Part shown: positions 52,259 through 53,920 of the stretch, piece by piece | How the letters are laid out: each line of letters begins with the position of its first letter | How positions within the stretch are numbered: the stretch's first letter is position 1 | Assembly (NCBI RefSeq): GCF_003704095.1 | Contig: NW_020844262.1 | Span: 310,001 to 374,000 of the forward strand | Length of the DNA: 64,000 bases | Origin: Pocillopora damicornis | Lineage: Eukaryota | Reading direction: 5' to 3' | Program-made: the position numbers and the translations under genes | The notes under the pieces: generated by a model | Database searches by the model: none | Told to the model about the DNA's origin: nothing | What the model saw: only the letters and a program-made list of their open reading frames with translations

Positions 52259-53920
52259 ATGGATACTCTTAAGGAATTATTTGGGCCAAAAACATTTAAC
52301 AAAATAAGCCATTTTACAGTTTTAATCTGGATCCTGATCGCTGTGATCTTCCTTGGCATATTTGCCGCCGTGGATAACACTGAATTCAGGTCTAATTTCC
52401 ACTGTGACGGAGCGAAGGGCGACATCACTGAATTCAATCGTGGAAAATGTTTCGATCAGTACGAGGGGAAATACAACAAATACAGTGTTCCTATCTATGG
52501 CTTCGTGATCATCAATTTCCTCTTTATTGGAATTGTTTGTCTTATTTACTCTCAAGTGGTGAGACCTACAGTCGATCAACTGTCGCTCGACCAAACTGGA
52601 AACAAGCTTTTTATCGCTTATTGCTTTCAACTATCCTTAAGACTTGTTTTACGAATTATTTTCATCATCCTACAAACTCAGTTGCTTTATCCTTTGAATT
52701 TTTCCACTAACTTTTACTGTGATTTAACCGATGGAACCACTCAGCTAAGGAATTCATGTAACAGCACCCAAAACTCTACTTGTTACGAATGTAACAATCA
52801 GCAGGCAATCAAGAAAACTTTCTGGTTAAACGCTGTCCTTGCAGTAAATGGAATTTTTGTCCTTGTAATTCTGATTGAAACCGTCTATATTTTGTTACGG
52901 GCATGGAAAGAAAGAAGTTTTATGCAAAACTCAGAGTTTCTTAGAGCACATCTAAATCCCCCCAGTAGCAATTCGCACCAAAAACCACAAAAGCAAGATG
53001 ACATTATCCCACGACAGCCAAGAGAGCGTGAACATCTTCCTGCCCAAGGCGAGCTGAACGAAACACGTGAAAAGAAAGGAGGAGGTGACGAACATGAAAC
53101 AGTTCCCCTACAGCAGGGAGAGCATGAGAATCTTCCCACCCAAAGCGAGCTGAACGAAACACCTGAACAGAAAGAAGGAGGTGACGTACATGAAACTGTT
53201 CCCCTACCAGCAGAGCATGAGAATCTTCCCACCCAAGGCGAGCTGAACGAAACACCTGAACAGAAAGAAGGAGGTGACGTACATGAAATAGTTCCCCTAC
53301 AGCCAGGGGAGCATGAGAATCTTCCCACCCAAGGCGAGCTGAACGAAACATCTGAACAGAAAGATGGAAGTGAAGAACATGAAACTGTTCCCCTAAAGCC
53401 AGGAGAGCATGAGAATCTTCCCACCCAAGGCGAGCTGAACGAAACAACTGAAAAGAAAGAAGGAGGTGACGAACATGAAACAGTTCCCCTACAGCCAGGA
53501 GAGCGTGAGAATCTTCCTACCCAAAGCGAGCTGCACGAAACACCTAAACAGAAAGAAGGAGGTGACGAACATGAAACAGTTCCCCTACAGACAGGAGAGC
53601 ATGAGAATCTTCCTACCCAAGGCGAGCAGAACGAAACACCTGAACAGAAAGAAGGAAGTGACGTACATGAGACTGTTCTCCTCCAGCCAAAAGAGCATGA
53701 ACGCCAACCGTCCCAAGGCGAGCTGAACGAAATATCTGAAGAGAAAGAAGGAGGTGACGAAGATGAAACATTTCCCCAAAAGCCAGGGAAGCATGGGGAT
53801 CTTCCTACCCAGGGCGAGTTGAACGAGACACCTGAACAGAAAGAAGGAAGTGACGAACAAGGAACTGTTCCCCTACAGCCAGGAGAACGCCAACCGTCCC
53901 AAGGCGAGTTGAAGGAATAA
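52259..53920 (+). CDS. Connexin-like four-TM channel protein with acidic 32-aa tandem-repeat C-terminal tail (553 aa, single coding exon)
   Basis: TM segments at ~aa 19-38, 77-100, 117-143 and 188-213. EL1 SNFHC...KCFDQY; TM3/EL2 LFIAYCFQLSLRLVLRIIFIILQTQLLYPLNFSTNFYC...YECNNQQAIKKTFW; TM4 LAVNGIFVLVILIETVYIL. Each parallels a connexin consensus block. The ORF is certain; the family assignment is by eye. Confidence 0.72.
   Translation: MDTLKELFGPKTFNKISHFTVLIWILIAVIFLGIFAAVDNTEFRSNFHCDGAKGDITEFNRGKCFDQYEGKYNKYSVPIYGFVIINFLFIGIVCLIYSQVVRPTVDQLSLDQTGNKLFIAYCFQLSLRLVLRIIFIILQTQLLYPLNFSTNFYCDLTDGTTQLRNSCNSTQNSTCYECNNQQAIKKTFWLNAVLAVNGIFVLVILIETVYILLRAWKERSFMQNSEFLRAHLNPPSSNSHQKPQKQDDIIPRQPREREHLPAQGELNETREKKGGGDEHETVPLQQGEHENLPTQSELNETPEQKEGGDVHETVPLPAEHENLPTQGELNETPEQKEGGDVHEIVPLQPGEHENLPTQGELNETSEQKDGSEEHETVPLKPGEHENLPTQGELNETTEKKEGGDEHETVPLQPGERENLPTQSELHETPKQKEGGDEHETVPLQTGEHENLPTQGEQNETPEQKEGSDVHETVLLQPKEHERQPSQGELNEISEEKEGGDEDETFPQKPGKHGDLPTQGELNETPEQKEGSDEQGTVPLQPGERQPSQGELKE

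Follow-up and report, generated by a model that had tools for sequence, protein, structure and literature searches.

An expressed stand-alone connexin-like gene of the coral Pocillopora damicornis and the sequons of its second extracellular loop

Connexins were long held to be restricted to chordates. A gene of the coral Pocillopora damicornis (assembly GCF_003704095.1, contig NW_020844262.1), found in a stretch of 64,000 nucleotides that we analysed as a whole (positions 310,001 to 374,000; called the window here), raises the question of what a connexin-like protein does in a coral, and whether the chemistry of its extracellular loops keeps it from docking into gap junctions. The initial annotation read the gene as encoding a hemichannel, and attributed the lack of docking to two conserved cysteines per loop and to N-glycosylation sequons on the second extracellular loop (EL2). 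The connexin fold, the exoplasmic position of this loop and, at the level of the family, the single-membrane pore stood up to our analysis, which did not establish the two proposed causes. We consider it probable that the gene encodes an expressed, stand-alone coral connexin-like protein (CxL), which is glycosylated on EL2 and forms a non-docking, large-pore channel of a single membrane. All positions are those of the window, and all features lie on the + strand.

Homology, fold and loop cysteines

The coding sequence (52259–53920) is complete and lies in a single exon, as seen from the open reading frames and RNA contigs. It encodes a protein of 553 aa (62.5 kDa, pI 4.7), made of a CxL domain with four transmembrane segments (aa 1–225; 52259–52933) and an acidic repeat tail. 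The domain was identified using Pfam, sequence matches in the PDB, a family profile and Foldseek. Against Pfam Connexin (PF00029/IPR038359), the 553-aa protein scored 17.4–19.3 bits (E=0.001–0.004), short of the 31.3 bits of the gathering score. All 14 matches of the same protein in a PDB sequence search were connexins. Despite the sub-threshold score of the single sequence, connexin homology holds at the family level, because the profile, the relatives and one paralog all match. The profile of 20 relatives matched Cx31.3 (PDB ID: 6L3T; E=9e-6, 28 bits) over the span from TM3 to the C-terminal tail only; PF00029 was matched by 15 of 17 relatives (best E=1.3e-10); and the paralog L004, with 39.7 bits, lies above the gathering threshold.

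The AlphaFold2 model of the protein is of moderate quality (pLDDT 70.4, pTM 0.61), and the disulfide pairs described below remain predicted. It shows a four-helix bundle, an N-terminal helix, a first extracellular loop (EL1) and an EL2 β-hairpin, which together correspond to the connexin fold. Foldseek, run against the PDB, returned 78 matches at E≤0.001; the best 50 of the 78 were all connexins (TM 0.45–0.69, E from 2e-5, 13–20% identity). The connexin fold claimed at the outset is thus borne out by the model, Foldseek and the family profile. Membership of the innexins or pannexins was rejected, since Pfam gave no Innexin/Pannexin match even at E≤10 and the best 50 Foldseek matches are all connexins. 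The classic vertebrate signature of three cysteines in each extracellular loop is absent; two are conserved per loop. The protein is a non-canonical connexin, inside the connexin superfamily as defined in a recent preprint (Butler et al. 2026, bioRxiv 10.64898/2026.06.13.731801).

The closest characterized protein is pmCxL30 (UniProt A0A3M6TUS9_POCDA), with a pairwise identity of 43–49% (43% to P0022, E=8e-52; 49% to L014). L014 is this genome's own copy of pmCxL30, with 257 aa and with K140 and R232 as in the preprint; its loops are identical to those of P0022. The pmCxL30 gene of this genome is located on another piece (s1-768100). Both proteins have the four-transmembrane fold, two conserved cysteines per loop and a CxL domain within a single coding exon, and both stand alone without a NACHT domain. 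The single exon, seen here as an unbroken frame with colinear RNA contigs, agrees with what defines the anthozoan CxL clade. The present copy differs from pmCxL30 in its two or three sequons at the EL2 tip, of which pmCxL30 has none, in an extra pair of cysteines (C167 and C175), in a shorter cytoplasmic loop and in an acidic tail of 328 aa as against 24 aa. In a tree, both proteins fall outside one group of NACHT-bearing paralogs, which is weakly supported (80/89). As 92% of the CxL family have the order CxL, then NACHT (and LRR) (bioRxiv 10.64898/2026.06.13.731801), the present gene is a stand-alone member of the anthozoan CxL channel family, in a minority with pmCxL30. The portion of the preprint's protein table that we covered has P. 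damicornis entries of 257–1303 aa and none at 553 or 573 aa.

The model places helices at aa 10–41, 79–107, 114–143 and 182–224. Hydropathy and the model together define loop 1 as aa 39–77 (EL1; 52373–52489), which contains no sequon, and loop 2 as aa 144–186 (EL2; 52688–52816). EL2 is a β-hairpin with strands at 151–157 and 173–180; its tip (159–170) is modeled with low confidence and is predicted to be flexible, 14–28 residues off either helix. The proposed lengthening of EL2 was confirmed by the profile alignment to Cx31.3, in which about 13 residues have to be inserted on the coral side between its first and its last cysteine. The cytoplasmic loop is approximately 20 residues shorter than in most relatives. 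In eight paralogs, the open frame runs on from TM4 straight into a cytosolic NACHT domain, and for this reason EL2 is supported as exoplasmic; a cytosolic sequon-bearing loop would have spoken against the initial annotation. The excess of sequons in EL2 and their scarcity in the cytoplasmic loop, described below, fit the same orientation. With four helices crossing the membrane, the N-terminus and the repeat tail are cytosolic, and both loops are extracellular.

The protein has cysteines at positions 49, 64, 94, 122, 154, 167, 175 and 178. The translation, hydropathy and the model agree with the earlier statement that EL1 holds only C49 (52403–52405) and C64 (52448–52450). We compared 55 non-identical homologous CxL domains (24–64% identical), and in this set C64, C154 (52718–52720) and C178 (52790–52792) are invariant, while C49 is present in 54/55. 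Two cysteines are found in EL1 in 54/55 domains and exactly two in EL2 in 52/55. Judged from this alignment, the conservation of 2+2 cysteines is far beyond chance. Two cysteines per loop were already noted for the CxL family (bioRxiv 10.64898/2026.06.13.731801), and Cx23, a connexin of the epsilon clade, likewise has only four loop cysteines (PMC3920103). C154 and C178, the first and last cysteines of EL2, align with Cys1 and Cys3 of the Cx31.3 EL2. The view that the middle cysteine was dropped and the end cysteines were kept is therefore upheld by alignment for EL2; for EL1, it is suggested by local motifs. An alignment of the single sequence with Cx32, which placed C167 at the first EL2 cysteine, was rejected because C167 is copy-specific and the profile puts C154 there.

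C167 (52757–52759) and C175 (52781–52783) bracket two N-S-T sequons (52757–52783). The present copy is the only one of the 55 domains with four EL2 cysteines; the other members mostly have S/T and L at these positions. RNA contigs of four studies list no differences at the two codons. A broken tandem paralog upstream (47810–48967) reads FDC...LECINQQ with no cysteine at either position, so that C154 and C178 are shared and C167/C175 are copy-specific, as had been proposed. Two inter-loop disulfides, C49–C178 and C64–C154, would tie the loops together. Connexins have three such disulfides, and the two here would be the counterparts of the outer and the inner one. A third, local bond between C167 and C175 may form in the present copy alone.

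Sequons at the EL2 tip and the docking of CxL channels

All three EL2 sequons named in the initial annotation (N147-F-S, N168-S-T and N172-S-T) are present in the translation, and all lie in loop 2. The last two form a cluster at the hairpin tip together with N165-S-C (52751–52780). N147-F-S (52697–52705) is found only in some relatives and begins four residues past the end of the TM3 helix (114–143 in the model). A sequon that lies too near the membrane is poorly used, and N147-F-S is probably too close. In the alignment of homologs, 53/55 CxL domains have one or more N-x-S/T in the stretch bounded by the two conserved EL2 cysteines, and 42/55 have at least two. These tip sequons are kept even in a subfamily that is 24–30% identical, the tip sequences of which are otherwise different. 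In 28 members, we counted 48 EL2 sequons versus 25.2±4.2 in composition-preserving shuffles, and 0 of 2000 shuffles reached 48; sequons in the cytoplasmic loop are depleted (2 versus 10 expected). As the sequences are related, the shuffle counts should not be taken as true probabilities. The near-universal EL2 sequons are new and are absent from the preprint (bioRxiv 10.64898/2026.06.13.731801).

N-glycans would most likely be attached at N168 and/or N172, at the tip of the lengthened EL2 hairpin. In connexins, the corresponding part of EL2 makes contacts between opposed hemichannels. The loops of vertebrate connexins are not known to be N-glycosylated. For the present protein, glycosylation, the pairing of its cysteines and any part that glycans may play against docking are all proposals read from the sequence and the model.

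Three anthozoan family members, pmCxL30, edCxL50 and plCxL60 (CAH3037244.1), are found at the plasma membrane and, when depolarized, release ATP or glutamate. In HeLa cells, they form hemichannels, with no plaques and no transfer of the dye NBDG (bioRxiv 10.64898/2026.06.13.731801). The single-membrane pore of the initial annotation has thus been found experimentally in the family, and by analogy we infer hemichannel function without docking for the present protein. Its subunits would assemble into a large-pore channel of a single membrane, which on depolarization would release small molecules, for example ATP or glutamate, and which, like the tested homologues, would not dock into gap junctions. 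Mutation of the carbamylation pair K140/R232 of pmCxL30 abolished CO2 gating (bioRxiv 10.64898/2026.06.13.731801). K116 in TM3 (motif K-L-F-I-A-Y; 52604–52606) and R214 in TM4 (52898–52900) align with these two residues and form a putative CO2 carbamylation pair. Raised CO2 probably also opens the present channel via K116 and R214.

Could the EL2-tip glycans be the docking block itself, as in pannexins, such that their removal would permit gap junctions? We regard this as unlikely. The hairpin-apex sequons, their retention in divergent subfamilies and their excess over the shuffles speak for it, and a block of docking by glycans has been reported for pannexins (Ruan et al. 2020, cited in PMC8769644). 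However, pmCxL30 does not dock, and L014, its copy in this genome, has 2+2 cysteines and zero sequons in either loop. Glycans are therefore not needed for non-docking in the CxL family, and they cannot be its sole cause. Moreover, seven innexins with loop sequons still make junctions (PMC8769644). The insertion of 13 residues in EL2 would by itself alter the docking surface, and the preprint attributes the lack of docking to the larger loops (bioRxiv 10.64898/2026.06.13.731801). The cysteine pattern does not predict a lack of docking either: with four loop cysteines, zebrafish Cx23 still forms gap junctions, whereas mouse Cx23 forms none (PMC3920103).

The transcript, the acidic tail and the missing NACHT domain

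Expression is shown by RNA contigs. They come from four RNA-seq studies, and polyA selection was used in three. The transcribed span is approximately 52138–54695, with a 5' UTR of ~60–120 nt and a 3' UTR of ~0.7–1.1 kb; exact transcript ends and strand are not derivable from the contigs. Contigs of all four studies are colinear with the genome and read across the stop codon (53918–53920), as expected of an unspliced mRNA, and none showed splicing across it. The region upstream (50500–51800) is near-silent in the same runs. The contigs break at 52620–52666, inside the open frame and adjoining the peak of summed contig depth, and this break may mark sequence common to the paralogs.

The cytosolic tail is made up of 9.1 tandem copies of an acidic, proline-rich unit of 96 bp (32 aa), as found by TRF (53014–53886). 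It has a pI of 4.5, with 82 D+E versus 27 K+R, and is homologous to the shorter linker between CxL and NACHT in the paralogs. The genome has eight such CxL-NACHT paralogs, and their CxL domains are 29–64% identical to the present one. Five NACHT-bearing paralogs served as tblastn queries, and the window gave no NACHT match to them. A NACHT remnant or downstream exon was rejected on this basis and by the lack of a splice over the stop codon. The gene at 52259–53920 is thus an expressed, unspliced, stand-alone CxL without NACHT, and the usual family layout, with NACHT/LRR after CxL, is not found in it. The CxL-NLR fusions (CxL-NACHT-LRR) likewise have a CxL domain and a repeat-like acidic linker; the present gene differs in ending within the expanded linker repeat, with no NACHT or LRR in the window.

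Such an architecture could also be that of a decaying CxL-NLR remnant, in which the linker repeat expanded and a stop was gained, leaving a transcribed gene with no working channel. The NACHT-bearing paralogs, the homology of the tail to their linker, the shortened cytoplasmic loop and the prevalence of NACHT in the family would all fit a truncated derivative. So would the dead tandem copy 4 kb upstream (L019, 47810–48967; identified from ORF pieces, TRF and tblastn), which has five stops inside the match, with frameshifts and stops across TM1–TM3, and lacks TM4, although its EL1 is intact with two cysteines and it has its own 96-bp repeat (6.2 copies). We nevertheless hold decay to be quite improbable. 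The frame of 553 codons is uninterrupted, and every family-invariant residue is retained. Between samples, the CxL-domain part differs by ~0.5% versus ~2% in contigs mostly of the 3' UTR, and the gene is expressed in the RNA libraries of all four studies. The stand-alone pmCxL30 is a working channel (bioRxiv 10.64898/2026.06.13.731801), and the portion of the preprint's table that we covered lists, for Stylophora, proteins of 495 and 549 aa made of CxL only.

A docking-competent coral gap-junction protein is the least plausible reading, and a very improbable one: the predicted connexin fold, the junctions made by protostome CxLs of the same superfamily (ofCxL40 and laCxL27; bioRxiv 10.64898/2026.06.13.731801) and those made by zebrafish Cx23 speak for it, but 3/3 tested anthozoan CxLs did not couple cells, and the EL2 apex here, with its two or three sequons, is both longer and poorly ordered. 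A word search of the profile matches for ofCxL40, laCxL27, edCxL50 and plCxL60 gave seemingly coral matches only: the few that have a name belong to corals, and none belongs to a protostome.

Comparison with known channels and meaning for coral CxLs

Several known systems resemble such a channel. Among them are two vertebrate connexins that lack a junctional function, Cx31.3 (GJC3) and mouse Cx23 (GJE1). Of the PDB sequences, the CxL profile matched Cx31.3 best, and this protein was solved as a hemichannel (6L3T). The match is remote, however, and Cx31.3 has a middle EL2 cysteine, which CxL lacks, and a shorter EL2. Mouse Cx23 shares the four loop cysteines and releases ATP without coupling cells, but differs in this from its zebrafish counterpart (PMC3920103). 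Pannexins, the chordate homologues of innexins, are also large-pore channels with four transmembrane segments and two cysteines per loop. They carry conserved extracellular N-glycosylation sites that are thought to prevent docking (PMC8769644), where CxLs have sequons. CxLs have no homology to pannexins, and the resemblance is one of possible working, not of family membership.

The main idea, that is, the family, its two cysteines per loop and its hemichannel-only behavior, has already been published as a preprint (June 2026; bioRxiv 10.64898/2026.06.13.731801). What is new here is the EL2 sequon pattern, the unique extra cysteine pair, and an expressed stand-alone CxL with an acidic tail of 9×32 aa. 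Coral CxLs, which are mostly fused to NLR immune receptors, alter the chordate-only picture of connexins. The initial annotation saw in such a pore a possible pre-gap-junction state of the fold; against this, protostome CxLs of the same superfamily do make junctions.

The sequon pattern offers a concrete hypothesis for the non-docking of coral channels, with one to three sites on a lengthened EL2 tip in almost every member. Tentatively, and with more doubt than conviction, we suggest that selection has conserved N-glycans at the EL2 apex in nearly all coral CxLs. They would either cap the channel in the manner of pannexins, and so hold it to hemichannel-only function, or offer an exposed surface of glycans for immune sensing by the CxL-NLRs. 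If so, the sequon-free pmCxL30, the main model of the field, would be the exception, and the present copy would add a unique, disulfide-bracketed tip with two sequons (C167 ... C175). As pmCxL30 is the one protein studied in depth, members that do carry the EL2-tip sites could separate the effect of loop length from that of the glycan. With its additional pair of loop cysteines, the present copy is a naturally occurring variant. It is also a second stand-alone CxL that is expressed, with an acidic tail that has expanded, and may provide a handle on the role of the channel without the NLR part.

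Open reading frame, fold and expression

The connexin-like (CxL) gene is a single long open frame (52259-53920, + strand) encoding a protein of 553 aa. The four-helix membrane domain occupies residues 1-225. Hydropathy segments lie at approximately 12-44, 75-106, 117-144 and 186-218, and the AlphaFold2 model (pLDDT 70, pTM 0.61) has helices at 10-41, 79-107, 114-143 and 182-224. After residue 225 the protein continues as an acidic, proline-rich tail (pI 4.5) encoded by a 96-bp unit repeated 9.1 times in tandem (53014-53886). Paralogs have a shorter acidic linker between their CxL and NACHT domains; the tail is homologous to it, and the tail repeat is an expansion of it. 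No NACHT-like sequence was found anywhere in the window. In eight paralogs, the frame that encodes TM4 continues directly into a NACHT domain (E=1e-25 to 1e-29), which places the C-terminus in the cytosol and extracellular loop 2 (EL2) on the exoplasmic side. A cytosolic position of the sequon-bearing loop, which would have spoken against the initial annotation, is thus not what we find. The N-E-T tripeptide in each 32-aa tail repeat is cytosolic, is not to be counted as a glycosylation site and is irrelevant to glycosylation.

The protein alone gives a sub-threshold match to Pfam Connexin (E=0.004, 17.4 bits; cut-off 31.3), and its 14 weak PDB sequence matches are all connexins and all colinear. 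A word-index protein search returned 31 strong relatives (best E=5e-79); one is annotated from the coral Desmophyllum pertusum, and many have a precomputed PF00029 match. Individually, 15 of 17 relatives matched PF00029 (best E=1.3e-10), and a profile built from 20 relatives matched human Cx31.3 (E=9e-6). The best 50 PDB structural matches of the model are connexins only. Together, these matches establish the protein as a connexin superfamily member in a coral. The tree does not firmly place the gene relative to pmCxL30 or the NACHT-bearing group.

RNA-seq assemblies from four studies (three polyA-selected) contain contigs colinear with 52138-52620, 52666-53130 and 53561-54695, several of which bridge the stop codon (53918-53920). 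The same runs show almost no signal over the 1.3 kb upstream of the gene, evidence against DNA carry-over. Samples differ at about 0.5% of sites in the CxL domain versus about 2% in contigs lying mostly over the 3' UTR, consistent with constraint on the domain.

Cysteines and sequons of the extracellular loops

Translation of the frame places every residue named in the initial annotation. Extracellular loop 1 (EL1) holds C49 and C64, and EL2 holds C154, C167, C175 and C178. We compared 55 non-identical CxL domains spanning both loops, 11 from the P. damicornis genome and the rest from protein searches. All 55 have C64, C154 and C178, and all but one have C49. Exactly two cysteines occur in EL1 of 54/55 domains and in EL2 of 52/55. 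Four EL2 cysteines occur in the gene studied here alone; S/T and L usually stand where it has C167 and C175, so these two cysteines are copy-specific, as had been claimed.

The profile alignment matches C154 to the first EL2 cysteine of Cx31.3 and C178 to the third. The middle one has no counterpart, and the CxL protein has 13 extra residues between C154 and C178, which bears out the lengthened loop and the loss of the middle cysteine. In the model, residues 47-50 make a short strand that contains C49, a helix at 58-72 contains C64, and each strand of the EL2 hairpin has one conserved cysteine, C154 or C178. The Cx26 structure has the disulfides C53-C180, C60-C174 and C64-C169. From these and the model positions, we infer the pairing C49-C178 and C64-C154. 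The putative correspondence of the EL1 cysteines to those of connexins comes from the local F-x-C and C-F/Y-D/E motifs.

EL2 carries the sequons N147-F-S, N168-S-T and N172-S-T, together with N165-S-C. At least one N-x-S/T lies between the conserved EL2 cysteines in 53/55 domains, and at least two in 42/55. Two EL2 sequons are still present in a subfamily that is 24-30% identical to this protein and has an otherwise different tip sequence. Across 28 members, 48 EL2 sequons were observed versus 25.2 +/- 4.2 when each loop was shuffled (48 was reached in 0/2000 shuffles), counts inflated by the relatedness of the members; the cytoplasmic loop had 2 versus 10 expected. Both this difference between compartments and the persistence of the sites in divergent subfamilies suggest that the EL2 sequons are really used.

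In the model, N165, N168 and N172 lie in or adjoin a low-confidence hairpin tip (159-170), separated from either helix by 14-28 residues. N147 follows TM3 by only four residues. As a general rule, a sequon close to a membrane helix is not used, and N147 probably is not.

RNA contigs (three runs; three of four studies) carry an A>C change at 52716, giving Y153S and adding an N151-F-S sequon beside the invariant C154. It could be an allele, or reflect a difference between sister species.

EL2 is shortest in the loci L004 and L014, the two domains without EL2 sequons. L014 (G000:C2122:356220-356909) is the genome's own pmCxL30 copy and the only one of the 55 with no sequon in either loop. pmCxL30 was the main protein tested in a recent preprint on the family (discussed below) and, as a model, may thus be unrepresentative.

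Other copies and neighboring genes

The window is eukaryotic with approximately 36% GC. A broken tandem CxL paralog (47810-48967, +) has five in-frame stops, frameshifts across TM1-TM3 and no TM4. It carries its own array (6.2 copies of a 96-bp repeat), and its EL2 keeps only the F-D-C and L-E-C cysteines. A fragmentary copy with in-frame stops (L011/L027; G000:C897:298766-299348) lies on the same contig, some 11 kb upstream of where the window starts, so that the contig has at least three CxL copies, one intact. Just upstream of the pair is a rhodopsin-type GPCR gene (44637-45608, +; PF00001, E=9.5e-23). A table in a recent preprint (bioRxiv 10.64898/2026.06.13.731801, June 2026) annotates Stylophora A0A2B4SIY4 with both CxL and GPCR domains, which suggests a conserved neighborhood or a merged gene model in Stylophora. 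Directly downstream of the CxL 3' UTR, the opposite strand carries exons of a polycystin-type gene (55373-60000, -; PLAT, E=1.4e-14; Polycystin domain; PKD_channel, E=4e-32). The window also holds LINE-like retroelement ORFs (9592-11281, +; endonuclease/exonuclease/phosphatase domain, E=3e-7) and a short ORF with a FAM210A/B-like domain (39747-40151, -; E=2e-8) adjoining a masked N run at about 41.1-41.5 kb.

Docking and the CxL family

The same preprint reports 4-100 CxL domains per anthozoan genome, with 13 in P. damicornis (our assembly: 234,350,878 bases, 4,393 contigs), and NACHT fusion in 92% of anthozoan CxL domains. Three anthozoan CxLs were tested there, pmCxL30, edCxL50 and plCxL60. 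All are found at the plasma membrane and respond to depolarisation by releasing ATP or glutamate; they form no plaques and transfer no NBDG between HeLa cells. At the family level, the 2+2-cysteine, non-docking hemichannel of the initial annotation had thus been described before. By homology to these three, the protein studied here is probably a single-membrane pore.

The causes proposed in the initial annotation fare less well. Loop chemistry does not by itself predict non-docking: junctions are formed by zebrafish Cx23, which has four loop cysteines, though not by mouse Cx23 (PMC3920103), and also by seven innexins that carry loop sequons (PMC8769644). L014 (257 aa, 29.8 kDa, K140 and R232) matches UniProt A0A3M6TUS9_POCDA, the pmCxL30 of the preprint. 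As this sequon-free protein does not couple cells, glycans are not required for non-docking in the family. That the missing middle disulfide and the glycans on the loop cause non-docking is therefore a proposal rather than an established fact, with pmCxL30 partly arguing against it. Glycans as an extra block to docking would be reasonable in the sequon-bearing majority, the present gene included.

CO2 opens some CxLs through a Lys/Arg carbamate bridge (bioRxiv 10.64898/2026.06.13.731801). In the present protein, K116 (in K-L-F-I-A-Y) aligns with K140 and R214 with R232, the CO2-gating pair of pmCxL30, from which CO2 sensitivity is predicted. As two protostome CxLs do couple cells according to the preprint, the present channel may or may not represent a pre-gap-junction state.

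The words "glycosylation" and "disulfide" are absent from the main text of the preprint, and "glycos" is absent from its supplements. The observation on loop cysteines and sequons was correct and holds for the whole CxL family, to which the protein adds a new, stand-alone member. The near-universal EL2-tip sequons, the extra pair of EL2 cysteines and the architecture with an acidic tail add modestly to the published description of the family.
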